Of a stretch of 33,009 bases of DNA, positions 7,344 to 31,295 are shown one piece after another. Both the position numbers and the translations under genes were made by a program. Each line of letters starts with the position of its first letter. Position 1 is the stretch's first letter. The notes beneath the pieces were generated by a model. It saw only the letters and a list, made by a program, of their open reading frames with translations, ran no database searches and was not told the DNA's origin. Location: NCBI RefSeq assembly GCF_006345805.1, contig NW_021832069.1, forward strand, positions 1-33,009, given 5' to 3'. This DNA is from Octopus sinensis (Eukaryota).

Positions 7344-7348
7344 ATCCA

Positions 7349-7493: not shown

Positions 7494-7511
7494 ACAATAA
7501 TAATAATAATA

Positions 7512-7555
<44 letters not shown>

Positions 7556-7584
7556 GTAAAAATAATAATAATAATAATAATAAC
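7494..7584. repeat. (AAT)n array
   Basis: Direct inspection. Confidence 0.95.
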
Positions 7585-7587
7585 AAT

Positions 7588-7680
7588 TCTTTCTACTGTA
7601 GGTACAAGGCTTATAATTTGGGAGATTGGAGATAGCCGATTGCATGGACCCCAGTACTCGACTGGTACTTAATTTATCGA
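7588..7680 (-). mobile_element. S2-related SINE 3' fragment
   Basis: GACCCCAGTACTCGACTGGTACTTAATTTATCGAC matches the S2 body. Confidence 0.65.
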
Positions 7681-7713
7681 CACACACGCACACAAAATGT
7701 ATGTATAATTATA

Positions 7714-7932
7714 GAGGGTAATTGAAAAGTAACTCCCTATTTTAAAAGACTTATAAATTATTTATTAATTGTAATTTGTACGATACAAATGACTATGAGA
7801 GGGAAGCTTTTGGTATGTGGTCTTATTTAAAATTAAAAAACTAACACAAAAACAAAAATATTAAGAAAAAATTACAATCAATAAATGATTTATAAGTATT
7901 TTGAAATAGGGAGTTACTTTGCAATCACCCTG
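7714..7932. mobile_element. Tc1/mariner-type MITE (219 bp)
   Basis: About 64-bp imperfect TIRs (7714-7777 / 7869-7932) ending ..CAATCACCCTG; TA at 7712-13 and 7933-34. Confidence 0.85.
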
Positions 7933-7994
7933 TATACTTACATACATACATACATGCATATATGCATGCATGCATACATACATACATACATACA

Positions 7995-8160
7995 TTATGG
8001 CTGCCCCCTCGTTATCGAGTATGGCCATTGCACGAAGCTTAACTGATACTGGTGCTGTGATCGAATGTGACTTTTTAGCGCAGCTAAAGATCTACAATGT
8101 CTTGTACAGAATTGGCAACTAAGACCTTTACTGGTAAAAGCCGGCTGTAGTTGTAACTGT
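7995..8160 (-). mobile_element. 3' end of an RTE-like LINE with a C-terminal C2H2-type finger
   Basis: 8052-8117 encodes CQFCTRHCRSLAALKSHIRSQH (C-x2-C-x12-H-x4-H), followed by a CTCG-ATAA-CGAG hairpin and GGCAGCCAT, like RTE 3' ends; embedded in (CATA)n. Confidence 0.6.
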
Positions 8161-8563
8161 ACATACATGTAGTTGTACATACATGCATACATACATGCAT
8201 ACATGCATGCATACATACATACATACATATATGCATGCATGCATACATACATGCATACATACATACATACATACATAATACATGCATACATGCATACATG
8301 CAGGCATACATACATACATGCATACATACATATATGCATGCATACATGCATACATACATGCATACATACATACATATATGCATGCATACATGCATACATA
8401 CATGCATACATACATACATACATACATACATGCATACATGCATACATGCATGCATACATGCATACATACATGCATACATACATACATATATACATTCATA
8501 CATACATACATACATACATACATACATACATACATACATACATACATGCATAGATACATACAT
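8160..8563. repeat. About 400-bp (CATA/CATG)n microsatellite
   Basis: Direct inspection. Confidence 0.95.
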
Positions 8564-9050
8564 ATCAGTGAAAAAGAGAATACGCTGAACAATTGAGAAC
8601 TATTGAGAAATCTGTAATTACTCTATACAGATTACAAGTTCAGGTTTATACCTGTAATTTTTGGAGCCTTGGGATGTGTACCAATCTTGAGAAATTAGGC
8701 TTCTCAAAACCAGGAAGGAGAAAGCTAATTCGAAGACTACAGATCCAATCCATCACTGGAACTATAAAGATTTGTAAAACTTTCCAGAAGTTTATCATTT
8801 GAATATATATGAGCATGTCTTGATTTGCAAGTATGCGCATGAGAATACGTACATAAAACAAAACATACAAATCTGCACATATACATACATACAGACAGAC
8901 AGACAGACAGACAGACTGACAGACTGACAGACAAACAAAAATACCCTGTTGTTAATGTTGAAATTCCAAAGAAGGAGCCTTGGATCTAGGTTAGAAACCG
9001 GTTCTTTCTCTATTGACAAGAAATCTTGAAATAAAACTGAACAATCTACA
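8564..9050 (+). mobile_element. 5'-truncated R4/Dong-like (restriction-like endonuclease) LINE: C-terminus plus 3' UTR
   Basis: Frameshifted translation ISEKENT / LLYTDYKFRFIPVIFGALG / TNLEKLGFSKPGRRKLIRRLQIQSITGTIKICKTFQKFII* (stop 8800-8802); the IPVxxGALG motif resembles the R4/Dong C-terminus. Confidence 0.6.
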
Positions 9051-9079
9051 TACATACATACATACATACATACATACAT

Positions 9080-9132
<53 letters not shown>

Positions 9133-9261
9133 TAGACTGACAGACAAACAAAAATACCCTGTTGTTTATGTTGAAATTCCAAGAAGGAGCCTTGGATCTA
9201 GGTTAGAAACCGGTTCTTTCTCTATTGACAAGAAATCTTGGAATAAAACTGAATAATTACA
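9051..9261 (+). repeat. Tandem duplicate of the LINE 3' tail: (CATA)n(CAGA)n plus about 118 bp
   Basis: 9145-9261 is nearly identical to 8932-9050 (offset 213). Confidence 0.9.
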
Positions 9262-9291
9262 TACATAGACACAATATGTAGGCTAGCTGAT

Positions 9292-9326
9292 GCGCTGATG
9301 ATGTCTTTTGAGACAGAAACGTATGT
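9292..9326 (+). ncRNA. Minimal type I hammerhead ribozyme motif with canonical core
   Basis: GCG-CTGATGA-TGTCT-TTTG-AGACA-GAAAC-GTA-TGT: CUGAUGA 9295-9301, 5-bp stem II, GAAA, loopless palindromic stem III ACGU, GUA site (cut after 9323); stem I only 3 bp with 2 G.U. Confidence 0.7.
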
Positions 9327-9441
9327 CCATTGCTCTCCTGCTGTTCCAGACAACCAGTCTTTTCCTTTATGACATTTTAGAAAATCCATGCTTTTTGAAA
9401 ATATCTCCCCTTCTCATTTGGAGTTTGAGCCAACAGCCACC

Positions 9442-10064
9442 AAACGCCAAGAGCGTCGCCTAAATATCTTTCACCTGCGCTGCCTCCAGAAAATCCTTGG
9501 CATCAAATGGCAGAATCATGTTCCCAACAAAGATGTCCTCAAGCAAGCAGGAATACCAAGCAAGTTTGCACTCTTCACACAAAGACGTATGAGATGGCTT
9601 GGACATGTTAGCCGTATGAAAGATGGCAGAATCCCCAAGAACATACTCTACGGAGAGCTTGCTAGGGGCACTAGGTCCGTGGGAAGACCGATCTTACGAT
9701 ACAAGGATGCTTGCAAAAGGACATGAAGGCCTGCAACATCAATATTAGAAACTAGGAAGCAGTTGCCAGTAACCGTGGAGACTGGCGACGTACCGTAAAA
9801 GAGGGAACACAAAGGAGTGACAGTGACAGAGAGAGAGAGGAGAAATGGAAAGACAAAAAAGACGTCCAACAAGAAAACTATGACACACAACCAGCCAGGC
9901 AAAAGTCTTCGCTACATTTGCGGCACCTGCCAGAGGGTTTTTTTGTCCAGGATAGGACTACACAGCCACGGCAGGAGATGTATTAGGACATGAATGTAAA
10001 GCCAGACTAGATTATCTTGTGCGCACTCCATTGTCTCCCGAGGCAAAAAGAACGCCAACAACAA

Positions 10065-10066
<2 letters not shown>
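9442..10066 (+). mobile_element. RTE-clade LINE 3' fragment (pseudogenised ORF C-terminus and 3' UTR)
   Basis: RQERRLNIFHLRCLQKILGIKWQNHVPNKDVL..RRMRWLGHVSRMKDGRIPKNILYGEL..GRPILRYKDACK; frameshift near 9720, in-frame stop, terminal finger CGTCQRVFLSRIGLHSHGRRC, (CAA)n tail. Confidence 0.9.
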
Positions 10067-10102
<36 letters not shown>

Positions 10103-10283
10103 TATTAAGGTGACTATTCACAATTTACAACAGGTAGGCACAAGTTTAGTAATCACTGAGGTGACTGAGGTTTCTAGTCAGCACCAGCTTCGCTAGAAAT
10201 AAGAGTCAAAACAACTCTTAGCCACATGAGACCACTTTCTAGCAACTGACAAAGGAGACAAGCTCCCTACGGCAAGCGAGATG

Positions 10284-10333
10284 GAGTCATGTCATCAATG
10301 ATTTCAGATTTGATTAATCTTCATCAGTGACCC
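10284..10333 (-). ncRNA. Type I hammerhead-like motif with a single defect at the cleavage triplet
   Basis: Minus strand GGGTCA-CTGATGA-AGATT-AATCA-AATCT-GAAATCAT-TG-ATGAC-A-TGACTC: 6-bp stem I (one G.U), 5-bp stem II, near-palindromic stem III; U16.1 is C. Confidence 0.65.
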
Positions 10334-10397
<64 letters not shown>

Positions 10398-10434
10398 TTA
10401 TTATATATATATAATATATATATAATATATATAT

Positions 10435-10849
10435 AACAAAAATGGGACAAGAACGCAAACAGCCAGACAGTTAGGTGAAACAAAAAAAGGGACAACAAAA
10501 TATCCAGATAGACGATACAAGAGTTCCAGATTATCTTTGCAATTTCGGCTGGTTATACTCGAGATTGCTCCAATCTGGCCAGCCCCATGGAAAAACTAAA
10601 CTACGAGCATTAGATTCCTTGGAAGAAAGCAGCGAATCTATACGAAAATACATTCGCTGCTTTCTTCCAAGAAATCTTATGCTTGTAGCTTATTTTTTTC
10701 CTTGAGGCTGGACAGATTGGAGTAATCTCAAGTATAACCAGCCGAAATTGCAAAGATAATGTGGAACTCGACTAAGGATAGAAAACTCCGAATGATCCGT
10801 CCTTGTTTACCTTGTATCGTCTGTCTGGATGTTTTGCGTTATTTTTTTT
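10435..10849. repeat. Foldback element: nested inverted repeats within (TA)n
   Basis: Arms 10521-10637 / 10652-10769 (roughly 90% by eye, inner 20 bp perfect, 14-nt loop); outer arms about 10496-10521 / 10811-10838. Confidence 0.9.
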
Positions 10850-10885
10850 ATATATAAAACAAGCGGCTTACGTGCACTTTTGTCT

Positions 10886-10923
<38 letters not shown>

Positions 10924-10939
10924 TATATATATAATATAT

Positions 10940-10981
<42 letters not shown>

Positions 10982-11452
10982 ATTATATATATATGAGAGA
11001 GAGAGAGAGAGCAATAAGAAAATGGAGGAGATCAATAGGTGGTTCATTAACTTTTAGACATTATATTATGTTAACTTATTTATTTATTTACTAAACTGAT
11101 AACTACAAGAATATACATACATATAACATATTATTCTTTACATATAAGATATAAGATATAAAATATAGTAATATATAAGGATGCTAGTAATTATTATAAA
11201 AAGTGTGAATATAATTTGGGAAAATAACTTACAGCTGTTTCAGCCAGTAGATAAAAATACCTCATTCTACCTTTATTACTCAAGTGGATTGAAGTAATAG
11301 GTAGATGAAAATGACGTACTTGTATATATATCTCTCTAAGTATATATATATATAATAACAAACGGTAAAATTAATTAATTAAGAAGTAATCAATAATTTC
11401 ACCAAGTAGAATTCGGCATGAAAAAGGACCATTACACAGTAAACTTAAGTAA

Positions 11453-11597
11453 TACTTTATAATTAGGGTTCAGCAAAGATTTGCTTTACCACATACCGAA
11501 GTTTAGAAATAGCAGAAGAAATAGCTAAGGTTTTTTGGCTGCTATTTCTAAACTTCGGTATGTGGTAAGCAAATCTTTGCTGAACCCAAATTATAAA

Positions 11598-11600
<3 letters not shown>
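11453..11600. mobile_element. Foldback MITE-like element (148 bp) with TA ends
   Basis: Arms 11453-11515 / 11539-11600 differ by one substitution and one indel; 23-bp spacer; related single arm at 26912-26989. Confidence 0.85.
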
Positions 11601-11651
<51 letters not shown>

Positions 11652-11667
11652 AATTATATACAGAAGA

Positions 11668-11698
<31 letters not shown>

Positions 11699-12212
11699 TT
11701 AAGAGAGAAACAGACAGATAGACAGCAACATAGCCCATCTCCACGTGTTTGTATTTCAACTTTTGAAATCAGAGAAAGCTGTGAAACCGGTTAAGTATTT
11801 AAAAATTTAAAAATAAAATCTAGACGATTCGTAGTGCATTTTCAACTTCTATGTGTATGTGCGTGCGCGTGTGTGTATATATACACATATATACACACTG
11901 AGGAAGGATAGAGAGGGGTACTATATATTCTCACATATATAAAAAAAAAGTTGAAAAAGAAAACTTAAATTAGATTAGAAGAGAAAACCTCCCGCTAGGA
12001 GTGTTTTAAAATCTAAAAACAGCCTAAAGGAAACAGAAATAGTTAATACTTTAAAAATATTTTAATCGCAATTAATTTTAGAAATATAGGCTTAGAAACA
12101 AATTGGGATTCTAGGCTAAGAATCCCACAGCGCTGTAACTTGACTTTTACTTGTAACCTCTGTTTCACTGTATTCTTGATTGCTTCTGTGCCTGTCCCGT
12201 TAACATGAATAT

Positions 12213-12254
12213 GCACGGCTGATGAACCTAACAAAATCGAAACATGACCCTTGC
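12213..12254 (+). ncRNA. Decayed type I hammerhead-like motif
   Basis: GCACGG-CTGATGA-ACCTAACAAAATC-GAAAC-ATGA-C-CCTTGC; core and 5/6 of stem I present, stem II unpaired, cleavage-site U lost. Confidence 0.35.
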
Positions 12255-12262
12255 TTAATCAG

Positions 12263-12483
12263 ATGATTTCAAAGGCAAGATCTACTCATAACCGTAATAA
12301 GCGAACAGACGGAGTTGTTCGAGTATCGGACAAAACACTTTGCAACATCTGTTCCGATTCTCTGCGCTCTGAGTTCTAATCACAGAGGTCGTCTTTATCT
12401 TTCGTCGTTTCGGGGTCGATAAAAAAAGGTGTATCAGTTCAAGACGAAGGATTGATGGAACTATAAAAGCATAGAAGTAAATG
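12263..12483 (+). repeat. About 220-bp segment duplicated at 13640-13865; includes a decayed S2 SINE
   Basis: Near-identical sequence from ATGAT(T)TCAAAGGCAAG to CATAGAAGYAAATG. Confidence 0.9.
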
Positions 12484-12897
12484 CCCTTCGGTATGTTGGC
12501 CATGGAGGCTTCCTATTGACTAAAATCACATAGCCTTAAAGCCTTGTAATTTCTTTATTGTCAATAACTTGAAACATTAACGTTATCTTCATTATCACCA
12601 AGCAAAACTAAGTCAGTGGAGAAATTTTGAAATAATTCAAGTATACACACACACACCACACACACATACATACAAAGTATTGGGGGTTTAGTTCACGGGC
12701 GATCTAAACGATTAGGTACGCTAGGTAAGTGTTGTAATGGATTACTAAGGCTCCAAGGTTATAGCCGAGACTGTAGTTATGGAGCCATTACAGATTTCCG
12801 ATGCAGTGGATATATAATTGTTAAAGAGGACAACAAACATTAAGGCAAGGTAAACATCTCAAGTCGCATACAATATTATCATTGGAAAAAATTCAAA

Positions 12898-12953
12898 GTC
12901 TTACAGCTGTTTCTGGGATATCCCCGAGTATGGGATATTCCATCAGCAGAGAC
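12898..12953 (-). ncRNA. Type I hammerhead-like motif with one core change (CUGCUGA)
   Basis: Minus strand GTCT-CTGCTGA-TGGAATATCCC-ATACTCG-GGGATATCCCA-GAAAC-AGCT-GTA-AGAC; 4-bp stem I, 11-bp stem II (1 mismatch), palindromic stem III ACAGCUGU, GUA site. Confidence 0.65.
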
Positions 12954-14093: not shown

Positions 14094-14264
14094 GCAGGAG
14101 TGGCTGTGTGGTAAGTAGCTTGCTTACCAACCACATGGTTCCGGGTTCAGTCGCACAGCTTGGCACCTTGGGCAAGTTTCTTCTACTATAGCCTCAGGCC
14201 GACCAAAACCTTGTGAGTGGATTTGGTAGACGGAAAGTGAAAGAAACCCGTCGTGTGTATATAT

Positions 14265-14308
<44 letters not shown>

Positions 14309-14758
14309 ATAATATATATATATATATATACAAATTGAGATAGGGGTTGTAAATGCAACCCTCCATGGGATAACATATATCCTATATACTGCTAGTGAAG
14401 TACCCAACAAAGTTAATACATAAATGTTAAGGATTGCGATGCAATCAATTCAATCATTTTATATATATATATATTATATATATATATAATGCATGTATGT
14501 ATGTATGTATGTATGTATGTATGTATGTATGTATGTATGTATGTATGTATGTATATGCTTGTGTGTCTGTGTTTGTTCTCCCAACATCGCTTGACAACCG
14601 ATGCTGGTGTGTTTACGTCCGCGTGACTTAGGGGTTCGGCAAGAGAGACCGATAGAATAAGTACTAGGCTAACGAAGAATAAGTCCTGGGGTCGATTTTC
14701 TCGACTAAAGGCGGTGCTCCAGCATGGCCGCAGTCAAATGACAGAAACAAGTAAAAGA
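14094..14758 (+). mobile_element. S1 SINE whose internal microsatellite contains a 130-bp insert (14331-14460)
   Basis: 5' half 14094-14253, (TA)n, insert, (TA)n/(GTAT)n, 3' half 14560-14758. Confidence 0.9.
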
Positions 14759-15596: not shown

Positions 15597-15601
15597 ATAC
15601 A

Positions 15602-15997
15602 TGGCTGTGTGGTAAGTAGTTTGCTTACCAACCACATGGTTCCGGGTTCAGTCCCACTGCGTGGCACCTTGGGCAAGTGTCTTCTACTATAGCCACGGGC
15701 TGACCAAAGCCTTGTGAGTGGATTTGGTAGACGGAAACTGAAAGAAGCCCGTCGTATATATGTATATATGTGTGTGTGTGTATGTTTGCGTGTCTGTGTT
15801 TGTCCCTCCAACATCGCTTGACAACCGATGTTGGTGTGTTTACGTCCCCGTAACTTAGCAGTTCGGCAAAAGAGGCCGATAGAATAAGTACTAGGCTTAC
15901 AAAGAATAAGTCCAGGGGGTCGATTTGCTCGACTAAAAGGCGGTGCTCCAGCATGACCAGAGTCAAATGATTGAAACAAGTAAAAGAGTAGAGAGAG
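15602..15997 (+). mobile_element. S1 SINE, near full length
   Basis: Full alignment to other S1 copies; TAAAAGAG tail. Confidence 0.9.
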
Positions 15998-16079: not shown

Positions 16080-16565
16080 GCATGCGTTTATTTAACATTA
16101 TTCGCAACTATCTGTTGTATATACACGAGCATAAATGCGTATGTATATAAATACCGTACGGAGTGTACAAACGAGTTTGTAAATATACGTGTGCAGAACT
16201 ATATGTATGTTAAAGAGAGCGTGTATTCAAACGATCGTGTTTGCTTCTAAACGAGATTGTAAATAGCTGAGCATGTGTGCGCGTGCGAGCGTGCGTACGT
16301 GTGTCTGTGTGTGCGTGCGTACGTACGTATGTCTGTGTGTGCGTGCGTACGTACGTGTGTCTGTGTGCGCACGTGTATCTATGTTCAAACAAGGACGTGT
16401 GCGTATTTATGTTAAACTGTGCGTGTGTGTCCGTGTCCAAACATGCTTGTAAATATGTGCGTAGGTTCACGAGAGTATCTGTTATTCTGTGTGTGTGTGT
16501 GTGTGCGTGGTGTGTGTGTGTGTGGTGTGTGTTGTGTGTGTGTGTTGTGTGTGTTGTGTGTGTGT

Positions 16566-16596
<31 letters not shown>

Positions 16597-16832
16597 GTGT
16601 CCAAACACGCTTGTAAATATGTGCGTATTTTCACGAGAGTACCTGTGTTATTCTGTGTGTGTGTGTGGTGTGTGGTGTGTGTGTGCGAGTGATGTGTGTG
16701 TGTGTGTGTGCGTGTGTGTGTGTGTGAATGTGTGTGTGTGTCAAAGTGAGCTTGAAAATATGTGTGCGTGTATGCTCGCGAGAGCACGTATGCGTATCTG
16801 CGAGCAGGTATGTGTATCTATGCTAAAGTGTA

Positions 16833-17814: not shown

Positions 17815-18730
17815 GCTTTCTATGACTGTTGCCTACTATCTCTATGACTGTCGTCCGTTGTAAGTCTATGACATTTCTCTATAATGGTCGTCTAATATTT
17901 CTCTCTGAGGGTCGTTTGATATTTTCTCTATGAATGTCGTCTGATATTTTCTCTATGAATGTCGTCTGATATTTTCTCTATGAATGTCGTCTGATATTTT
18001 CTCTATGAATGTCGTCTGATATTTTTCTGACTTTCATCTGATATTTCTCTATGACCATCATTTAATATTTCTCTATGACCGTCGCCTACTATTTCTCTAT
18101 GACTGTCATCCGATATTTCTCTTTGACTAATTAGTGTCTTATGACTGTCGTCTAATACAAGGAATATTTACTCTTTTACTTGTTTCAGTCATTTGACTGC
18201 GGCCATGCTGGAGCACCGGCTTTAATCGATCAACTCGACCCCGGGACTTATTCTTTTGTAAGCCCAGTACTTATTCTATCGGTCTCTCTTTTGCCGAACC
18301 GCTAGGTAACGGGGACATAAACACACCAGCATCGGTTGTCAAGCAATGCTAGGGGGACAAACACACACAAGCATAGATTTATATATACATATATACGACG
18401 GGCTTCTTTCAGTTTCCGTCTACCAAATCCACTCACAAGGCTTTGGTCGGCCCGAGGCTGTAGTAGAAGACACATGCCCAAGGTGCCACGCAGTGGGACT
18501 GAATCCGGAACCATGTGTTTGGTAAACAAGCTACTTACCACACAGCCACTCCTGCGCCTATTGTCTGCTATGCTCCATGAGTGTCGTCTGATATTTCTTC
18601 CTCTGACATGTCTATTATTTGTCTTAAGACTGTCGTTTGTTATGTGTCCCGTATGACACTCTACGACACTCCTTCACTATGTTCGTAGTATGACTGCTGC
18701 TGATTCTGTGTATGGCTGTCGTCTGCTATT
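17815..18730. repeat. 25-bp minisatellite (GATATTTTCTCTATGAATGTCGTCT), split by an S1 SINE
   Basis: Four perfect units 17918-18017; degenerate units either side and again at 18560-18730. Confidence 0.85.
18168..18560 (-). mobile_element. Full-length S1 SINE
   Basis: Reverse complement of the S1 consensus from GGCGCAGGAGTGGCTGTG to the TAAAAGAG tail. Confidence 0.92.
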
Positions 18731-19941: not shown

Positions 19942-19958
19942 AAAAATTTTTTTTTAAC

Positions 19959-20356
19959 TAAGTAGCTTGCTAACCAACCACATGGTTCCGGATTCAGTCC
20001 CGCTGCGTGGCATCTTGGGCAAGTATCTTCTGCTATAGCCCCGGGTCGACCAATGCCTTGTGAGTGGATTTGGTAGACGGAAACTGAAAGAAGCCTGTCG
20101 TATATATGTATATATATATGTGTGTGTGTATGTGTTTGCGTGTCTCTCTGTTTGTTCCCCTAGCATTGCTTGACAACCGATGCTGGTGTGTTTACGTCCC
20201 CGTAACTTAGCGGTTCGGCATAAGAGACCGATAGAATAAGTACTGGACTTACAAAGAATAAGTCCCGGGGTCGATTTGCTCGACTAAAGGTGGTGCTCCA
20301 GCATGGCCGCAGTCAAATGACTGAAACAAGTAAAAGAGTAAAAGAGTAAAAGAGTA
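19959..20356 (+). mobile_element. S1 SINE, slightly 5'-truncated, (TAAAAGAG)3 tail
   Basis: Alignment to other S1 copies. Confidence 0.9.
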
Positions 20357-20558: not shown

Positions 20559-21112
20559 GGATCTTTTCGGTTTGAACGGCAGTTTTTTCTAGCGGTGTCA
20601 TATGAAATTGTCACCCATAATTATGACCCTAGTATCGATCTATTGCATTTCAATCTGTTTTAGGGTTAGGGTTAGGGGTGAGGGGAAGGGTATATTTTTT
20701 TCTTCACAAATGTGAATAAACCCAATCTGTTTCTTAAACGAGGGACATATTCATACGGCACAATAGAATGTGTTTATAAAACATCTTTTTCTCTTGGTTT
20801 TATTGAGAAAATTCTATAGTTTGTAAGATATTTGTTGTTTTTTTTCTTCAATTTCTGCTATTTCAATCGATCAATGACGTGTATTGAGGTTACAAACATT
20901 CTGTGCCGTATGAATATGTCCCTCGTTTAAGAAACAGATTGGGTTTATTTACATTTGTGAAAAAAAAAAGATACCCTTCCCCCCACCCCTAACCCTAACC
21001 CTAACCCTAAAACAGATTGAAATGCAATAGATCGATACTAGGGTCATAATTATGGGTGACAATTTCATATGACACCGCTAGAAAAAAACTGCCGTTCAAA
21101 CCGAAAAGATCC
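20559..21112. mobile_element. MITE family A copy 1: foldback recombinant with two telomere-bearing ends (554 bp)
   Basis: TIR GGATCTTTTCGGTTTGAACGGCAGTTTTT at both ends; about 200-bp inverted arms; flanks CCAGCATTT / CCAGTATTT (the latter overlapping the terminal CC). Confidence 0.9.
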
Positions 21113-21183
21113 AGTATTTGTTCTAAAACAACAAGGAGAAACTCGTACGTCTGCAGACGAAAGTAACAGAGGCGACTCTCCCC

Positions 21184-21518
21184 CGCTTTGTCTTTGGAAA
21201 TCTCTCGTGGAAGCGTCATCCAACCAAAATGCAAATATATGGGAAACTACCACCTGTGTCATTTCTTGTGAAAGGTAGGAGAGTCCAGTTTGCTGGACAT
21301 TGTTGTAGAGCTGAAAACAAGGCAATTTCTACTCTTCTCCTCTGGAAGCCATCTACTCGCAATACCAGAGGGCGCACACTCTCCTACCCTGATGTAATCT
21401 CCAGGGATACAGGCATCCAGCAACAGGACCTCCGTAATGCCATGATGGACCGTGAAGTCTGGCGTAGCATGGTAAATTCCATTGTCTCGACCACGGTCGA
21501 ACAATGATGATGATGATT
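21184..21518 (+). mobile_element. RTE-like LINE 3' end
   Basis: LSWKRHPTKMQIYGKLPPVSFLVKGRRVQFAGHCCR..GRTLSYPDVISRDTG..AMMDREVWRSMV; (TGA)n tail. Confidence 0.75.
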
Positions 21519-22120
21519 ATCTTTACGGTGAGTTAGTATCTCCTACGGAAAGACGATAAAATATTCGAAATAGAAATTAATGATCTACAGCATATCATGA
21601 TGAACTCTGCCTGATACAACGTATATTAGATAAAATTTTTGAGCTTCGATGACTGTTCGTTTGTCTTCTTCCTGTAACCGATTGAAGTGTTAATGCATAG
21701 TGGACCGAGCCACGAACAAGCAGAGTTAACTGCAGCATTGGCGGAAAAATACTCCAGCAGCTTTTACGTTTTTTTTTTTTTATGCAATCAACAACTACAA
21801 GATTGAGTTGATAGGCGTGGTTGTAGATATAAACTGCAAATTGAGTATTGACACGCAATTTCGCTTGAACAACAGCAAGCTTTCCCGTTCATGACCAAGA
21901 TATTGGTATCATTCGAGGGGTGAGAAGGGTGCGGACCGCACCGGATGACACGATCAAAGGAAGTGAGCTCAAAATAATATCTCTAAACAATTTTAGGGCC
22001 TAATTTGCGCATCTTATGTAACAAAGTTTAACATTCTAATCGACATAATTTTGATGTAATTTTAAAATGTTTTTATTTCAAATTCTCTTACTTTCAAAAT
22101 ATGAGTAGATTCAGACTGTG

Positions 22121-22480
22121 GGATCTTTTCGGTTTGACCGGCAGTTTTTAACATTTTAAAACTTCGTATACTGGTAGAATGTGTTTAGAAAACATCTTTT
22201 TCTATAGTTTGTAAGATATTTGTTGTTGTTTTTTTTCCAATTTCTGCAATTTCAACCAATCACTAACGTCTATTGAGGTGAAAACATTCTGTGCCGTATG
22301 AATATGTCCCTCGTTTAAGGAACAGATTGGGTTTATTTACATCTGTGAAGATACCCTTCCCCCCACCCCTAACCCTAAAAGGGATTGAAATGCAATAGAT
22401 CGATTCTAGGGTCATAATTATGGGTGACAATTTCATATGGCACCGCTAGAAAAAACTGCCGTTCAAACCGAAAAGATCCC
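22121..22480 (-). mobile_element. MITE family A copy 2 (360 bp, small deletions)
   Basis: TIRs; 9-bp TSD CAGACTGTG at 22112-20 and 22481-89. Confidence 0.92.
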
Positions 22481-22988
22481 AGACTGTGTGTATGATATTG
22501 TAAATTAAAAGTGTAATTTTATCAGTTGATATTGTTACAATCATTGTGATTACGCCCAGTTTTATTTGAGAATTACGATTTACATGTAAGGTTAGTATAG
22601 AAAAAAATTGTCTTTATTGAGGATTCATTACAGTCTGGTTTGGGAAGAGGCCGATGGCTTAGGTGGGTAACACAACGAGTTAAGGCAATAAGCGATAAAG
22701 ATGCTAACGACGTCACTGGATCAAGACACCACCACAGATAGAATTGGGTGACACGTAAGTGGACATGAACACCGACATCGATTATATGCACAATATGTAC
22801 TGGTGTAGAAGTAATTCAGCATCAAATTTAGAAGCTGTTCGATGTTCAATAAATTCTCCGTTGCCGGCATTAGGCATTATCAGTAAAGTAGCACAGAACA
22901 AATGCGAACAAGGAATCATTACTTCGACATTTTTTTTTTTTATCAATTTTGTCTTTCATTACTGGATGCCAAGATAGAAAGAAACTCG

Positions 22989-23432
22989 GGATCTTTTCGG
23001 TTTGAACGGCAGTTTTTAACATAATTTCTAGGTAACTAAAAAATTTTGAACTTCGTATACTGATAGAACGTGTTTATAAAACATTTTTTTCTCTTGGCTT
23101 TATTGAGAAAATTCTATAGTTTGTAAGATATTTGTTGTTGTTTTTCTTCAATTTCTGCAATTTCAACCAATCAGTGACGTCCATTGAGGTAAACAACATT
23201 CTGTGCCGTATGAATATGTCCCTCGTTTAAGAAACAGATTGGGTTTATTTACATTTGTGAAGAAAAAAAGATACCCTTCCCTCACCCCTAACCCTAACCC
23301 TAACCCTAGCCCTAACTAACCCTAACCCTAAAATAGATTGAAATGCAATAGATCGATACTAGGGTCATAATTATGGGTGACAATTTCATATGACACCGCT
23401 AGAAAAAACTGCCGTTCAAACCGAAAAGATCC
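22989..23432 (-). mobile_element. MITE family A copy 3 (444 bp)
   Basis: TIRs; 8-bp TSD GAAACTCG at 22981-88 and 23433-40. Confidence 0.95.
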
Positions 23433-23606
23433 GAAACTCGTCCTGAGTAACATGATGCAATTATTTTGTGTATTTTGGGGCCCACCCATTATCCACTTCC
23501 ATAGAGTCCGTGGGTTGATATCAGACTTGTTATTTCTGTCACATCGTCTTGTCCTTGTCCGCCATGATTATGTCCTCGTTGGGGCATTTATTGTAAAGCC
23601 TTAAAT

Positions 23607-23880
23607 CAGTGGTTCCCAAACATTTTCAAGCTGTTGCCCCCTTGACCCCTCAGACCACTTTCCTAGCACCCCCACCCCAACTAACCATCACAAACATAGA
23701 CCCCTTTCTGAAGCAAATTCAAAGCAACCGTATTTCACAAATAAAACTTCACCCAATGAACCCACTATTTTGTTGTTTTTACATGAATCGCTTCTTTTGG
23801 CTACCCCCATTAACGCGACACTTTTCTTGGAACTTTCCACCACCCTAGAGGTGCAATTCCGCCCACTTTGGGAACCACTG
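23607..23880. mobile_element. hAT (Charlie-type) MITE (274 bp)
   Basis: 14-bp TIR CAGTGGTTCCCAAA; flanks CCTTAAAT / TCTCAAAT (6/8 TSD). Confidence 0.85.
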
Positions 23881-24039
23881 TCTCAAATCAATAAAACAAA
23901 GGTAAAACCGAATAGGGAACACATGTTTTCACGAATTTGTTTTGCATGAGTTTCGTTAGTCATAAATAATACAGAGATTTTCCTATTTCCAAGTCGTACT
24001 TTTTGCCTTTCTTATGTAGTCTTTACATACGGAAACAGT

Positions 24040-24262
24040 GGATCTTTTCGGTTTGAACGGCAGTTTTTTCTAGCGGTGTCATATGAAATTGTCACCCATA
24101 ATTATGACCCTAGTATCGATCTATTGCATTTCAATCTATTTTAGGGTTAGGGTTAGTTAGGGTTAGGGGTGGGGGGAACACATTCTATCAGTATATGAAG
24201 TTTAAAATTTTTTAGTTACCTAGAAATTATGTTAAAAACCGCCGTTCAAACCGAAAAGATCC
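24040..24262 (+). mobile_element. MITE family A copy 4, internally deleted (223 bp)
   Basis: Both TIRs and the telomere tract retained; no clean TSD. Confidence 0.88.
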
Positions 24263-24754
24263 GAACATTCAACATCTTCAGTTGCTGCAACAAGTCTCTA
24301 ATAAACGGTTTTACATCTACTATATCCATTAAATCTGCAAAAAAACGGAATTAGCAGGTTGTTTATAAATAAATGTCTTTGTTTAAAAATGACAAAAAGG
24401 TCTGCTCACACAGTAGCCTGACACATTAAGAAGCAGCGCTATATCACCACTAAAAATAAACAAGCATTATTATCACATTACATTGTTAAATAAACAAATA
24501 TTATTTTTACAATGAGCGAATGCTTTTTTTGCACCGTCTCAAAAACGCTTAAGTTTAATTCAGCTTGAAAAAAGCAGCTATATTTTGTTTATTGTGAATG
24601 TGGCTGACGGAGGAGCGATAACAAGAAGTATAGAGTCGGGCTTTGGGTGACCTGTTGTATATTTAAGCTTAATAACCAAACGGGCAAGACTATGTACAAC
24701 ATAAAAAAAGATACCAAAAGAAAAATGCAAATAAAAAAGAAAAGAAAAAAGAAG

Positions 24755-25216
24755 GGATCTTTTCGGTTTGAACGGCAGTTTTTTCTAGCGGTGTCATATG
24801 AAATTGTCACCCATAATTATGACCCTAGTATCGATCTATTGTATTTCAATCTGTTTTAGGGTTAGGGTTAGTTAGGGTTAGGGTTAGGGTTAGTTAGGGT
24901 TAGGGTTAGGGTTAGGGGTGGGGGAAGGGTATCTCTTTTCATCACAAATGTAAATAAACCCAATCTGTTTCTTAAACGAGGAACATATTCATACGGCACA
25001 GAAGGTTTTTTTTTACCTCGATGGACGTCATTGATTGGTTGAAATTGCAGAAATTGAAGAAAAACAACAACAAATATCTTACAAACCATAGAATTTTCTC
25101 AATAAAGCCAAGAGAAAAATATGTTTTATAAACACATTCTACCAGTATACGAAGTTTAAAAGTGTTTAGTTACCTAGAAATTATGTTAAAAACTGCCGTT
25201 CAAACCGAAAAGATCC
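24755..25216 (+). mobile_element. MITE family A copy 5 (462 bp, longest TTAGGG tract)
   Basis: TIRs; 8-bp TSD AAAAGAAG at 24747-54 and 25217-24. Confidence 0.95.
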
Positions 25217-25489
25217 AAAAGAAGAAAAAGCAAGCAAAAACAAAATAAAATAAAGAACTGTGTGGGTAAGAAACCACAGGCACAGGCATAGATGTGAGGT
25301 TAAGAAACTCGTTTTGCATCCACTATGCGGCACCTTAAGCAAGTGTCTTTTGTTACAGCTAGGTGTGATTTGAGAGAAATTTAGTTGTTTTTTCTAGCGG
25401 GTCCAGCGACGAGTTTCTTTCTTTATTCGCTCGTGTAGTGTAGTGTCGTGCAGTTAGCCCCATGTTAGCTCCAGTGATTATGGTTGCGG

Positions 25490-25795
25490 GGTGGAGGCAG
25501 TAAGAGTAATGGTTGTGGTGGTGGTGGTAGTGGTGGTGGTGGTGGTGGTGATGGTGGTGGTGGTGATATTGGTGCTCGTGATAGTGATTGTGGTGTTGTT
25601 AGTGTTGTCCGTGGTGGTGGTGGAGCTCGTGATGGTGGTGGTGATGTTGTTAGTGTTGTCCGTGGTGGTGGTGGAGCTCGTGATGGTGGTTGTGGTGGTG
25701 GTGCTGATGGTTGTGGTGGTGGTGGTGGTGGTGTTGGTATTGTTCGTGATGGTGTTGGTTGTTGTCCATGATAGTGGTGGTGGTGGTGGTGGTTG
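25490..25795. repeat. Degenerate (GGT)n array with a 51-bp internal duplication
   Basis: TGTTGTTAGTGTTGTCCGTGGTGG.. at 25594 and 25645. Confidence 0.9.
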
Positions 25796-26043
25796 TGTAT
25801 CTCGTTACACACGATTAACCACTTCACGTTCGAGTGAGCAGTATGGCTTCCACCTAAACCCCCCAGACAGAGACAATAACAGTGCTGGATCAATAGCTCT
25901 GTAGGCCGCACTGGATCGCCTCAGCCGTCTTTCCTGCCTTATTATCAGGACAATTGCTCCACCATGAACGTGGACTGATATGACATTACGCAACAACAAC
26001 AACAACAACAACAACAACAGTAACCAGCGTTACGGCCACGACC

Positions 26044-26074
<31 letters not shown>

Positions 26075-26104
26075 CTACCATCCGACTAACAGAATTAACA
26101 ACGC

Positions 26105-26208
26105 GGTAGGTAGCTTGCTTACCAACTACATGATTCCGGGTTCAGTCCCACTGTGTGACACCTTGGGCAAGTGTCTTCTGCTATAGCCTCGGGACGACCA
26201 AAGCCTTG
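26105..26208 (+). mobile_element. S1 SINE 5' fragment
   Basis: TAGCTTGCTTACCAAC..GGGTTCAGTCCCACTG..CCTTGGGCAAGTGTC. Confidence 0.85.
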
Positions 26209-26442
26209 GTTGCATATTTGTGTGAATAAAATCGGTTTTCCTTGGAATAGAAAAAAAGTCTATGTTTATTCCTTCTTTTGCTGGTGTCTCAAATTTAGGT
26301 TAAATCCGTGTTTCTCAAAGGGGAAGCCTATGGACGGTCGGACAAGTTGTTTTGAGAAAATTTGGTTCAAATGTTTGACAACTCAGCACCGTCCATTGGA
26401 GGGGGGGCGTTTTGCTCGTAGGATATATATATATATATATAT

Positions 26443-26748
26443 ATCACGTGATCACGTGACCGACCAGACGATCAGATGTTGCTACACATCGCTGGTCACA
26501 ATGTGTTCGCATCGTTTTAGCCTTCGAATGACGTCACCCCGCTGGCTAAGCGAGCAGGCCAACAGACGAAAGAGTGAGAGAAAGAGTGGTGAAAGAGTAC
26601 AGCAGGGATCACCACCTCCTGTCGGAGCGTCGTGGAGCTTTTGTAGGTGTTTTCGGTCAATAAACACACACAACGCCCGGTCTTGGAATCGAAACCGCGA
26701 TCCTACGACCGCGAGTCCGCTGCCCTAACCACTGGGCCATTGCGCCTC

Positions 26749-26751
<3 letters not shown>
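26443..26751 (-). mobile_element. S4 tRNA-derived SINE with tail X
   Basis: Minus head GTGGAGGCGCAATGGCCCAGTGGTTAGGGCAGCGGACTCGCGGTC..GGTTTCGATTCC; head shared with 28700-28878. Confidence 0.85.
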
Positions 26752-26781
<30 letters not shown>

Positions 26782-26870
26782 TATAATATATATATATATA
26801 TATATATAATATATATATATTAATATATATATATATATATATAATATATATATATATAATTATATTATAG

Positions 26871-26905
<35 letters not shown>

Positions 26906-26911
26906 AATATA

Positions 26912-26989
26912 TACTAAGCAATAGGGTTTAGCAACGAGTTGCCTTACCACATACCGAATTAGAATAGCAGTCAAAGGTTTATGCTATTT
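26912..26989. repeat. Single diverged arm of the 11453-11600 foldback family within (TA)n
   Basis: AGGGTTTAGCAA..TTGCCTTACCACATACCGAA..TAGCAG. Confidence 0.7.
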
Positions 26990-26996
26990 ATATATA

Positions 26997-27058
<62 letters not shown>

Positions 27059-27060
27059 GC

Positions 27061-27230
27061 AAATTTACGAACAAAAGACGAAGACAAATGAAGGAACAAC
27101 AAATAGGTGTACGTATTAGTTCAACATTCGGGAAGAATGGGAAAAGCTTTGACGTTTCGAGCTTACGCTCTTCGACAGAAAGGATGGAGAGGAAAAAAAT
27201 GGAGAGAACGAAAAAATCAGAGAAGTGAAA
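27061..27230 (-). mobile_element. Second copy of the 6629-6800 element
   Basis: Shared blocks listed for 6629-6800. Confidence 0.6.
27147..27182 (-). ncRNA. Variant minimal type I hammerhead-like motif (core CUGUCGA+A)
   Basis: Minus strand CTTT-CTGTCGA-A-GAGC-GTAA-GCTC-GAAAC-GTC-AAAG; perfect stems I and II, GUC site. Confidence 0.5.
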
Positions 27231-27247
27231 TCAAAATCAAATTCGAT

Positions 27248-27718
27248 GACTGGCATCCGTACTACCGGGATGCAAAGAGCACCATACGAGTGTGATCGTT
27301 GACAGAGCGGGTAACTGGCTTCCGTGCCAGTGGCATATAAAAGACACCATTCGAGTGTGATCGTTGCCAGCGTCGCCTTACTGGCTTTTGTACCCATGCT
27401 AGTAGGGTGCCAAGAGCACCATCCGAGCGTGATCGTTGCCAGAGCGGCTAACTGGCTTCCGTGCCGGTGGCACGTAAAAGGCACCATTCGAGCGAGGTCG
27501 TTGCCAGTACCGCCTGACTGGCCACGTGCTGGTGGCACGTAAAAAGCACCCGCTACACTCTCGGAGTGGTTGGCGTTAGGAAGGGCATCCTGCAGTAGAA
27601 ACTCTGCCAGATCAAGATTGGAACCTGGTGCAGCCATATGGTTCGCCAGCCCTCAGTCAAAATCATCCAACCCATGCTAGCATGGAAAGCGACGTTAAAC
27701 AATGATGATGATGATGAT
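27248..27718 (+). mobile_element. SINE/LINE-tail-like element with internal 65-72-bp tandem units and (GAT)n tail
   Basis: CACC(AT) unit starts at 27280, 27345, 27417, 27482, 27547; then GGCGTTAGGAAGGGCATCC..CATGCTAGCATG..(GAT)n. Confidence 0.75.
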
Positions 27719-27734
27719 ATATATATATATTATA

Positions 27735-27774
<40 letters not shown>

Positions 27775-28215
27775 TATATATTGTTGGTTTTCTTGTCCTG
27801 TCTTTTACTGTTTTTATCTTTATTTGTACTGTTTTTTTCTTCATTTTGTATTGTTTTTACGTCCTGTTCTTGTCACTTTTTTCTTTTTTACCCCTCCACA
27901 AAAAAAATTTATTCAATTCATTTTGCGGGAAGGACTGCTTCGGCGAGGTCGTGTTCTGCCCTTACCTTCGAAACACGCAATGAGTCGAAACAGGGGCAGC
28001 TGAAGAAGGGGAATGTTCCGTGTGTTGTTTGCCTTGTACTCTGTTTTTTCGTTGTTAAAAAAAGTCCGTTTCCTTGTTTGGTTTTATGTTTTCGTTTCTC
28101 GTTATGTTCTACGTTTATTTGTGGTGCCCTGTACTCATATATGCATGTATATATACATATAGCTGTAGGTATGTACATATATGTATGTATGTATATGTTT
28201 TATTTATTAAATTGT

Positions 28216-28254
<39 letters not shown>

Positions 28255-28255
<1 letters not shown>

Positions 28256-28402
28256 CTTCATTCAGTTCCCGTCTAGCAAATCCATTCACAAGGCTTTGGT
28301 CAGCCCGAAGTTATAGTAGAAGACAGTTGCCCAAGGTATTACGCAGTGGGACTGAACTCGGAACCTTGCGGTTGGGAAACAAGCTTCTTACCCCACAACC
28401 AT
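28255..28402 (-). mobile_element. Diverged S1 SINE 5' half
   Basis: TTCAGTTCCCGTCTAGCAAATCCATTCACAAGGCTTTGG..CAGTGGGACTGAAC. Confidence 0.8.
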
Positions 28403-28482
28403 ACAAGCGCTTTCTTCAAGAACGTAGAGCAATGTAATCCATGCTTAAGATATATAAGTAAATGCTAATAACAAATCGGATT

Positions 28483-28878
28483 GATGGATGGATGGAAGCA
28501 CTCCGTCGGTTACGACGACGAGGGTTCCGGTTGATCCGAATCAACGGAACAGCCTGCTCGTGAAATTAACGTGTAAGTGGCTGAGCACTCCACAGACACG
28601 TGCATCCTTAACGTAGTTCTCGGGGATATTCAGCGTGACACAGAGAGTGACAAGGCCGGCCCCTTGAAATATAGGTACAACAGAAACATGAAGTAAGAGT
28701 GAGAGAAAGTTGTGGTGAAAGAGTACAGCAGGGATCACCACCATCCCCTGCCGGAGCCTCGTGGAGCTTTTAGGTGTTTTCGCTCAATAAACATTCACAA
28801 CGCCCGGTCTGGGAATCGAAACCGCGATCCTATGACCGCGAATCCGCTGCCCTAACCACTGGGCCATTGCGCCTCCAC
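28483..28878 (-). mobile_element. S4 SINE with a different 3' tail (tail Y)
   Basis: Head and body match 26565-26751; the tail does not. Confidence 0.85.
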
Positions 28879-29035
28879 AGAGAGAGGATACATATTTGCT
28901 GTATATACCCGTAATTCAATTATATGGTTTTGGGGTTTTAAATTTATATACTGTTTTAATTCCCAGGAGACGCCAAAAGCGATTTGAGAGTCGAATATAA
29001 ATCTCCCTTCTAACGTCTCTCATTTGCTACTTTTC

Positions 29036-29036
<1 letters not shown>

Positions 29037-29082
<46 letters not shown>

Positions 29083-29108
29083 TTCTCTCCCTCTCTCCCC
29101 CTCTCTCT
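29037..29108. repeat. (CT)n microsatellite
   Basis: Direct inspection. Confidence 0.95.
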
Positions 29109-29163
29109 CACTTTTATTCTCACACTAAATCCCACCTCTCCCTCAAACTCACACACACATAAC

Positions 29164-29608
29164 GGATCTTTTCGGTTTGAACGGCAGTTTTTTCTAGCGG
29201 TGTCATATGAAATTGTTACCCATAATTATGACCCTAGTATCGATCTATTGCATTTCAACCTGTTTTAGGGTTAGGGTTAGTTAGGATTAGGGTTAAGGTT
29301 AGGGGTGGGGGGAAGGGTATCTTTTTTTCTTCAGAAATGTAAATAAACCCAATCTGTTTCCTAAACGAGGGACATATTCATGCGGCACAGAATGTTCTTT
29401 TTTACCTCTATGGACGTCATTGATTGGTTGAAATTGCAGAAATTGAAGGAAAAAAACAACAAATATCTTACAAACTAAAGAATTTTCTCAATAAAGCCAA
29501 GAGAAAAATATTGTTTTATAAACACATTCTACCAGTATAATACGAAGTTTAAAATTTTTTAGTTACCTAGAAATTATGTTAAAACTGCCGTTCAAACCGA
29601 AAAGATCC
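29164..29608 (+). mobile_element. MITE family A copy 6 (445 bp)
   Basis: TIRs; TSD CACATAAC (29156-63) / CACATGAC (29609-16), 7/8. Confidence 0.93.
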
Positions 29609-29699
29609 CACATGACTAAGCCAATCATACATGTAAGTAAATGAACTCTGTGTATATCAGATGTTCACTCAACAGAAGCCGGAAGTGACTTTTTTTTCA

Positions 29700-29812
29700 T
29701 TGCGCAATATTCCACAGACACATGTCGCCCCACTCCCTTAAAATATTCCTCGGGTAGAATCAGCGTGACATAACACGTGACAAGGCTGGTCCTTTGAATT
29801 ATTACAGGTAAA
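29700..29812 (-). mobile_element. Decayed fragment of SINE tail Y
   Basis: CCACAGACAC..CAGCGTGACA..GTGACAAGGCTGGTCCTTTGAA matches 28590-28680. Confidence 0.55.
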
Positions 29813-30071
29813 CAATTATCATCAGCGGGCTTTCACACAGCTTCCGCCAACCCATTTTTCATTCACAAGGCTTGGAGTCGACTGGAGGCTGCAACAAAAA
29901 CAAACAAGCAAATAAAAAAAAAACATACTTTACTTCCTGTAACTAACGTAAAACCCTAGCCATTACTTTCAACGTACAATAAAGAGAATTCGTTTTACAC
30001 TCTGAATTTGTTGATCTACATCAGAAATCAAAGAGAACAGGGAAAAATTATTCCAAAATGGAGTAACATTT

Positions 30072-30144
30072 GGATCTTTTCGGTTTGAACGGCAGTTTTT
30101 TAAAATAATTGCCACGTAACTAAACACTTCTAAACTTAGTATAC
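30072..30144. mobile_element. Solo end of a sister family sharing the family A TIR
   Basis: Identical 29-bp TIR, then a diverged subterminal region; truncated by (CT)n. Confidence 0.75.
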
Positions 30145-30172
30145 TCTCTCTCCTCCCCCTCTCTCTCTCTCT

Positions 30173-30210
<38 letters not shown>

Positions 30211-30313
30211 TATATATGATCAAACAGTATGCTTCATTATTTGGTATAGTTGCCTGAATTTGCTCTTCCCCTTTTCTTATTTTAATACTCTATCTCTCTC
30301 TCTCTCCTCTCTA

Positions 30314-30368
<55 letters not shown>

Positions 30369-30883
30369 ATATATATATATATAATATAGATATATATATA
30401 TATATATATTATATCAAGCTGTGTGTCTGTCTATGTTTTTGCCTGTAAGAAGGTATTGTGCCCATGCGATTGATGTTCTTCTTGAATAGCTTCAACTGAG
30501 AGCTACAAAGAAAAACAGACCCAGACAGGGAATTTCAGAGGTCAGACGCGTTCAAGAGGAGAAATAGTGGGCGAAATAATTCAAGTGAAGTTTTCCAAGA
30601 AGGACATATGTGTGACGTGAAAGAAGAGACGACGAATATCGTGTAATGTGGTAGCGATAGAAAAGCCAAAACGTACAGATTTGTACGTTTGCGGTCCAGA
30701 ATATGGACTGTGTTCATGATCAAATTTATATGATCGAATTTCAGCACGTAAACTTTCTGAAAACGATACGTTTTCAACGAATGAGCTTTTAAAAACCTTT
30801 CATGTTCATTGTTTTAACAACCTTATACAAAACCTTATTAAGTCTAGCGCTGAGATGTTACGCAGCCGGGTATTGCCCGATGA

Positions 30884-31295
30884 GGATCTTTTCGGTTTGA
30901 ACGGCAGTTTTTTCTAGCGGTGTTATATGAAATTGTCACCCATAATTATGACCCTAGTATCGATCTATTGCATTTCAATCTGTTTTAGGGTTAGGGGTTG
31001 GGGGAAGGGTATCTTTTTTTCTTCACAAATGTAAATAAACCCAATCTGTTTCTTAAACGAGGGACATATTCATACGGCACAGAATGTTTTTTTTACCTCA
31101 ACAGACGTCAGTGATTGGTTGAAATTGCAGAAATTGAAGACAAAAACAACAAATATCTTACAAACTATAGAATTTTCTCAATAAAGCCAAGAGAAAAAGA
31201 TGTTTTATAAATACATTCTACCAGTATACGAAGTTTAAAATTTTTTAGTTACCTAGAAATTATGTTAAAAACTACCGTTCAAACCAAAAAGATCC
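30884..31295 (+). mobile_element. MITE family A copy 7 (412 bp)
   Basis: TIRs (right end with 2 changes); perfect 8-bp TSD CCCGATGA at 30876-83 and 31296-303. Confidence 0.95.

Follow-up and report, generated by a model that had tools for sequence, protein, structure and literature searches.

A Merlin-like family of miniature inverted-repeat elements carries a telomere-like tract of variable length in octopus

How does a short region of an octopus chromosome come to hold many separate runs of TTAGGG, the motif of its own telomeres? The question is raised by a 33,009-nucleotide stretch of Octopus sinensis contig NW_021832069.1 (hereafter the window), in which TTAGGGTTAGGG occurs 22 times, compared to 0 occurrences in 100 shuffles. 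The initial annotation of this stretch assigned the runs to a Merlin-like family of MITEs (miniature inverted-repeat transposable elements), each copy carrying a telomeric tract with a G-quadruplex (G4) motif. Our analysis leads us, with good confidence, to a similar answer: the runs at 20559-31295 belong to a MITE family, probably moved by a Merlin transposase, in which a telomere-motif microsatellite hitchhikes and which has probably spread by local hopping.

Structure of the element family

A 29-bp terminal inverted repeat (TIR; GGATCTTTTCGGTTTGAACGGCAGTTTTT) has 15 matches in the window at three or fewer mismatches and none in 100 shuffles. The matches pair into seven TIR-bounded copies of 223 to 554 bp plus one truncated end, all within positions 20559-31295. 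All element ends begin GGATC, TIR mismatches number 0 to 2, and the typical element is non-coding and about 440 bp long. Perfect 8-bp target site duplications (TSDs) flank c3 (22989..23432, minus strand, 444 bp, full length; GAAACTCG), c5 (24755..25216, plus strand, 462 bp; AAAAGAAG), and c7 (30884..31295, plus strand, 412 bp, with two mismatches in its right TIR; CCCGATGA). The duplication around c6 (29164..29608, plus strand, 445 bp) matches at seven of eight positions (CACATAAC/CACATGAC), and that around c2 (22121..22479, minus strand, 359 bp, with two short internal deletions) is 9 bp long (CAGACTGTG). The ends and duplications are thus as first annotated, namely a 29-bp TIR starting with GG and TSDs that are perfect 8-mers in three cases, 7/8 in one, and 9 bp in one.

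The two rearranged copies are the ones without a clean TSD. One, c4 (24040..24262, plus strand, 223 bp), is an internal-deletion derivative that kept both TIRs and has no TSD. The other, c1 (20559..21112, 554 bp), is a left-left foldback with perfect TIRs at both ends, whose arms run from 20559 to ~20769 on the plus strand and from ~20770 to 21112 on the minus strand, with the junction GGCACA|ATAGAATGTG near 20769/20770. The truncated right end, c8 (30072..~30146, minus strand), was not among the copies annotated initially; it consists of the TIR and about 45 bp, runs into (TC)n(TA)n microsatellites, and has no tract. A profile built from the full-length copies and run over the window found no further copies.

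Outside the tract the window copies are 93-98% identical. They lie in both orientations, their flanks are unrelated to one another, and the five TSDs all differ. The longest stop-free stretch in the element is 76 amino acids and runs through the repeat, and its six-frame peptides, searched in concatenated form against 5.8 billion proteins, had no homologue in any frame. A tblastn search of the window with Merlin proteins returned nothing, no Merlin-like open reading frame (ORF) is present in the window, and Rfam and tRNA scans of the window gave no match, nor did its ORFs when looked up exactly in public assemblies. Because TIRs, independent TSDs in unrelated flanks, a lack of coding capacity, and close likeness among copies occur together, this is a MITE family, which upholds that part of the initial annotation.

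The telomere-like tract varies in length at a fixed position

In each tract-bearing copy, always about 100 bp in from the left end, TTTTAGGG(TTAGGG)n leads into a G-rich tail whose sequence is GGGGTGGGGGGAAGGG or nearly so. Tracts of 27 to 76 bp, with 2 to 9 exact TTAGGG units, occur in copies that are otherwise near-identical. The shortest are those of c2 (22354-22380) and c7 (30983-31009), with two units each. The two arms of c1 hold three exact units (20658-20690, G strand on plus) and four (20974-21012, G strand on minus). The tract of c4 (24139-24175) has four units and a TTAG interruption, and that of c3 (23274-23333) has six exact units, one CTAGGG variant, and the same interruption. 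The longest tract, in c5 (24854-24929), has nine units and a duplicated 22-bp TTAGGGTTAGGGTTAGTTAGGG module, and c6 (29263-29317) has four exact and two variant units. The TTAG interruption is confined to c3-c6. The range of unit numbers and the distribution of the interruption agree with what had been read from the letters alone.

Every tract contains at least four runs of three or more G. Seven of the eight tracts contain a canonical G4 motif, its loops no longer than 7 nt, and the same proportion is predicted to form a three-layer G4 by the ViennaRNA G-quadruplex proxy. The exception is c6, which has no canonical short-loop motif and for which the proxy gives only two layers. The initial claim of G4 potential in every copy therefore stands with regard to the G-runs, but extends to a canonical motif in all tracts except that of c6. 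By their sequence the tracts qualify as interstitial telomeric sequence (ITS) and as G4-forming sites, the folding itself being a prediction. Their retention in every window copy is expected, because these copies are so young. The initial annotation had also envisaged recruitment of telomere proteins, telomere healing, and effects on chromatin; what support these have consists in the presence of the motif.

Telomere-like tracts occur in more than one octopus repeat family, because a second repeat in the window (5307-5858) carries one as well. Its tract (5472-5571) has the G strand on the minus strand and is built of TTTTAGGG(TTAGGG)2 modules with a 20-bp period. A copy of 71% identity with its own degenerate tract lies in another O. 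sinensis locus (L009 7140-7668). We considered whether this repeat belongs to the MITE family and kept it separate, as the two have nothing in common beyond the tract and a short string, CTTTTCGGTT.

A relative in Octopus bimaculoides retains a degenerate tract

A 710-bp relative of the MITE was found at 5575-6284 of L010, an O. bimaculoides contig retrieved for its Merlin ORF. It has the TIR GGATCTTTGGGGTTTGACGGGCAACATTT and a perfect 8-bp TSD, TAACGTTG, and is a right-right foldback. Its center holds a degenerate telomere-like tract, with the G strand at ~5889-5965 followed by the C strand at ~5977-6018, in which units such as TTTAGC, GTGAGGG, TTCGGG, and TTAGAG are found. Since this relative keeps such a tract, the ancestor of the family already had one, and it has been retained even as its units became imperfect; the diverged relative is better evidence of persistence than the window copies are. 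The degenerate state of these units argues against selection for perfect TTAGGG. Foldback derivatives are thus present in two species, left-left in the window (c1) and right-right in O. bimaculoides, and their tracts are inverted accordingly.

The same contig holds a separate fragment of a family right end (...AGTATACGAAGTTTGAAAG...AAAAGATCC), whose end at 4602 lies about 550 bp beyond the stop of the Merlin ORF at 4056, the ORF being about 450 bp upstream of the fragment. The nearness of the two is suggestive only.

A CRE-like/CCAAT block is more conserved than the TIR

The initial annotation pointed to CCAATCA..GACGT in several copies. These motifs belong to a 46-column block, CTCAAT(A/G)GACGTCA(N)TGATTGGTTGAAATT(G/A)CAGAAAT, which is the best conserved part of the element when window copies are compared to the O. 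bimaculoides relative: 85-89% identity, compared to 72% in the TIR and 51-70% elsewhere. We located it in the window at 20860-20880 (c1), 22249-22269 (c2), 23160-23180 (c3), 25025-25045 (c5), 29414-29434 (c6), and 31105-31125 (c7), and in both arms of the relative, at L010 5728-5752 and 6099-6123. Both motifs are intact in c3, c5, c6, and c7, in agreement with the annotation; they are partly mutated in c2 and in c1b and deleted in c4 and in c1a (c1a and c1b being the arms of c1). We take the block to be a GACGTCA like that of the cAMP response element (CRE) beside an inverted CCAAT in an NF-Y-type context (CTGATTGGTT).

Because the block is more conserved between species than the TIR, it suggests a functional cis-element. 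It is the best functional candidate in the family, possibly as a transposase-binding site or as a promoter remnant from an autonomous ancestor. In L009, upstream of an O. sinensis Merlin ORF (P0072), TGACGTCAGACGTCA and CCAATCAG at ~9620-9640 and ~9895-9905 are of the same motif types as the block, although this likeness is loose and may be due to chance.

The ends show the hallmarks of a verified octopus Merlin

Merlin elements are described as having TIRs of 24-462 bp, a conserved terminal 5'-GG, with which all described families start, and TSDs of 8 or 9 bp, and O. bimaculoides is unusually rich in them (PMC8101967). The MITE shows all three structural features, with its GG ends, 8/9-bp TSDs, and 29-bp TIR. 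We compared it to a Merlin element verified by its transposase (P0133; PF12762, DDE_Tnp_IS1595), which is identically encoded at three loci of O. sinensis and O. vulgaris: L006 4266-12996, L008 4253-12997, and L007 ~3887-12953. These elements of about 8.7 kb are 99% identical, have TIRs of about 350 bp starting GGCGATGTTTCG / GGCATAGTTTCGGTTG, and are flanked in all three cases by perfect 8-bp TSDs (GCAAATCT, CAAGGCTT, and GAAACTTT). A MITE of this Merlin, about 470 bp long, is nested inside another Merlin ORF at L009 10779-11248, with GG ends and a TSD matching at seven of eight positions. GG ends with 8-bp TSDs are thus what Merlin yields in octopus.

The verified Merlin is also recently active, unusually large, and carries an extra internal inverted copy of part of its TIR. 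It was tried and rejected as the autonomous partner of the MITE, as the TIRs differ. A further candidate source of a partner, L011, was set aside because the contig comes from another organism. On that contig (ENA ERZ26222911), positions 4381-10236 consist of a 1473-bp unit containing a Merlin transposase fragment, repeated about four times in tandem at 99.5-99.7% identity.

The copies are clustered

All eight copies lie inside 10.7 kb, and the first 20.5 kb of the window have none. No copy turned up in about 83 kb of further sequence from O. sinensis and O. vulgaris. Under uniform placement this clustering has P ~0.002-0.006, a value from a post hoc test. Segmental duplication was rejected as the source of the cluster, since TSDs and flanks differ between copies. 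The cluster is most simply read as the outcome of local hopping or of a regional preference for insertion.

Proposed mechanism and alternative explanations

In the mechanism we propose, a trans-acting cut-and-paste DDE transposase, most probably of the Merlin/IS1595 type, would recognize the 29-bp GG-initiated TIRs. The element would be excised and reinserted, often nearby, with a staggered cut giving rise to the 8-bp (occasionally 9-bp) TSD. The ancestor of the family would already have held the telomere-motif microsatellite and its G-rich tail about 100 bp inside the left end, and telomerase repair could be the way in which it first gained them. From then on the tract would travel as a passenger, its length shifting by replication slippage, including the module duplication in c5, while point mutation would erode its units in older copies. 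The deletion in c4 and the foldback in c1 may stem from aberrant gap repair or from template switching. The conserved block would be the candidate transposase-binding site or promoter inherited from the autonomous ancestor, and the dispersal of short interstitial telomeric, G4-capable sites would be a by-product.

Several results weigh against parts of this mechanism. The TIRs of the MITE and of the verified Merlin have only the GG and one 8-mer (TTTCGGTT) in common, and in shuffle tests the likeness reached p ~0.04 for one end of the verified Merlin and was not significant for the other; TIR-sequence likeness is non-defining for Merlin, as its families differ widely in their TIRs. The window, 10 retrieved loci, and the sequence collections yielded no autonomous partner sharing these TIRs. 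Exact TIR scans of metagenome, prokaryote-genome, and viral collections, which hold little or no cephalopod DNA, returned nothing, as did a scan of metagenomes, equally poor in such DNA, for the conserved block; in full-text papers the TIR sequence gave only chance 12-mers in unrelated work. In L010, homology between the O. bimaculoides and O. sinensis copies of the Merlin there stops at 4232, short of the MITE-like right end, and upstream of its ORF there is no left end to match. In O. vulgaris, 21 Mutator families have been recently active, as against 2 of Merlin (PMC13282606). A joined-flank search for a paralogous empty site in the window found none, and the test of clustering was made after the cluster had been seen. 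Finally, the tract, a presumed passenger, persists in a relative whose unconstrained regions are at ~50-70% identity.

On balance, we consider a Merlin-type transposase the probable driver of the family, as judged from the form of its ends and duplications. The Merlin label given initially fits but falls short of proof, since the loci and collections covered gave no partner that has these ends and encodes a transposase: the GG ends and 8/9-bp TSDs match both published and verified octopus Merlin, but the likeness in TIR sequence comes down to a single 8-mer. The lack of a partner and the non-significant TIR likeness equally leave room for another superfamily. If a transposase of a Mutator-like element (MULE), the most plausible of the non-Merlin sources, moved the MITE, the agreement with two Merlin hallmarks would be a coincidence; the preponderance of active Mutator families in O. 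vulgaris speaks for this, but MULEs typically leave TSDs of 9-11 bp, and six of the seven scorable TSDs of the family are 8 bp, with one of 9 bp. We think it unlikely. A transposase of another superfamily, such as hAT or P, appears improbable to a similar degree and would also leave the Merlin hallmarks coincidental. The MITE termini are GGATC and not the YARNG typical of hAT or the CATG typical of P, so that for hAT the length of the TSD fits but the termini do not. Both superfamilies do produce 8-bp TSDs in the Wicker-type classification (summarized in PMC8101967), but the GG start common to all described Merlin families and the identical behavior of the verified octopus Merlin stand against either, as they do against a MULE.

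As for the tract, it could be a selected functional module, with or without the CRE/CCAAT block, which binds a TRF-like or other telomere-repeat protein or forms a G4. The benefit to the element might lie in nuclear tethering, transposase recruitment, or transcription; alternatively, the host might have co-opted the module, as a regulatory site or one that acts on chromatin. The tract does keep the same relative position in the diverged relative, at least four G-runs remain even in the shortest and deleted copies, a three-layer G4 is predicted for most tracts, the neighboring block is more conserved than the TIR, and a second, unrelated octopus repeat family holds the same type of module. On the other side, the O. 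bimaculoides tract is heavily degenerate and c6 has lost its canonical G4 motif, which indicates that perfect repeats are not maintained; unit number varies from 2 to 9, and no length is favored; in copies this young, retention cannot be taken as a sign of selection; and slippage alone can keep microsatellites. We therefore regard a selected module as rather improbable. More doubtful still is the specific form in which tract and block together make up a conserved cis-module kept across octopus species. Such a module could act as an internal promoter transcribing through the telomeric repeat to give an RNA that resembles telomeric repeat-containing RNA (TERRA) or forms a G4, or telomere-repeat-binding and NF-Y/CREB-type factors could dock on it and so aid mobilization or local re-insertion of the element. 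Least credible of all is that the tracts are ordinary ITS, left by chromosome fusion or telomerase break repair, with flanks repeated by segmental or tandem duplication. The confinement of all copies to one 10.7-kb stretch would fit, and short ITS inserted at break repair are known in vertebrates, but each copy has its own TSD and unrelated flanks, both orientations occur, the tract is in the same place inside the element every time, some 100 bp from a perfect TIR, and the relative has its own perfect TSD on an unrelated contig of another species. The constant internal position of the tract is the reason why we rejected fusion relics. A hitchhiking microsatellite in a MITE, with slippage as the probable source of its variation, remains the explanation we prefer.

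Other repeats in the window and in compared loci

The window is octopod DNA, as the matches of one repeat family show, in agreement with the mollusc presumed in the initial annotation. It is rich in a family resembling short interspersed nuclear elements (SINEs), with an internal (GTAT)n/(TA)n microsatellite, whose copies are 85-92% identical to copies from O. sinensis (GCA_006345805.1) and O. vulgaris (GCA_951406725.2). Copies lie at 908-1411, 3037-3265, 14098-14758, 15599-15994, 18167-18561 (minus strand), 19945-20337, and ~28250-28430, and the family had no match in Rfam or among tRNAs. C-terminal tails of reverse transcriptase ORFs from long interspersed nuclear elements (LINEs; RTE/CR1-like, ...RRLRWLGHV...) are present at 9373-9723 and 21127-21504, both on the plus strand, the second adjoining c1. 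Relatives of this second tail were found only in ENA metagenome assemblies and a Tara transcript. The long contigs with relatives of the LINE tail (L001-L003) come from another organism, with 71% nucleotide identity, and have neither the SINE-like family nor the MITE. At 6320-6689, on both strands, are fragments whose translation, judged by eye, looks like the DNA-binding N-terminal region of a transposase of the mariner type.

Simple and tandem repeats are also present around the MITE cluster. Upstream of it are a 25-bp minisatellite of 10.7 copies (17869-18126) and a 164-bp duplicated (TG)n-rich unit (16418-16741). Directly after c5, at 25480-25800, is a long imperfect (TGG)n/(GGT)n array with a 9-12-bp sub-periodicity, its G-rich strand being the same as that of the c5 tract. 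Between c5 and c6, at 27271-27550, lies a tandem repeat of 65/137-bp units in about four copies with 74-86% matches.

Relation to known elements and significance

Ciliate DNA transposons that bear the host telomeric repeat include TBE1 of Oxytricha and Tel-1 of Tetrahymena. Like the octopus MITE, these are cut-and-paste-type elements that take the telomeric repeat to internal chromosomal sites. In them, however, the repeats are at the extreme termini, and the elements are removed in macronuclear development, whereas the octopus tract is internal and the termini are ordinary TIRs. With Merlin (related to IS1016/IS1595) and its MITEs the family has in common the 5'-GG termini, TSDs of 8 and rarely 9 bp, and a TIR within the published size range; it differs in that no DDE_Tnp_IS1595 partner with these TIRs was found and its TIR is not significantly similar to that of octopus Merlin.

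MITEs with hitchhiking repeats include the (GTCY)n elements of Lepidoptera, Xstir in Xenopus, pearl/BIV160-type elements of bivalves, and the microsatellite-associated MITEs of pineapple (PMC6947457, PMC8449440). These, too, are short non-autonomous TIR elements with an internal simple repeat that is copied to each site and varies in unit number. Unlike theirs, the unit of the octopus MITE is the host telomere motif, followed by a G-rich tail, so that the product is a G4-capable ITS. Copies with short runs of the host telomere repeat are also found among endonuclease-lacking Penelope-like elements (Athena) and in a fungal subtelomeric family (PMC4522978). Those are retroelements whose 3' repeats prime on chromosome ends and which have a fixed orientation at telomeres; the octopus MITE, in contrast to the Penelope-like elements, belongs to the DNA transposons, has its tract inside the element, and lies at internal sites in either orientation. 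In the papers searched we found no description of an internal telomeric tract in a Merlin element, nor in a Merlin-type MITE of octopus or of any other organism. Hitchhiking-repeat MITEs and telomere-bearing transposons were both already known, and the passenger of the octopus MITE is mildly unusual.

Current understanding is unchanged unless the tract or the block proves functional. Were the two a cis-module after all, the MITE would actively spread functional binding sites for telomere proteins through cephalopod genomes. The family itself offers a clean example of ITS spread through an animal genome by a DNA transposon and not by chromosome fusion or break repair. It is also a natural experiment, because near-identical loci that differ mainly in TTAGGG number make the instability of extratelomeric tracts directly measurable. 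What cephalopod genomics gains is a MITE family with strong local clustering that was recently active and is probably driven by Merlin, together with its foldback derivatives and a 46-bp CRE/CCAAT block, conserved between species, as a concrete candidate cis-element.

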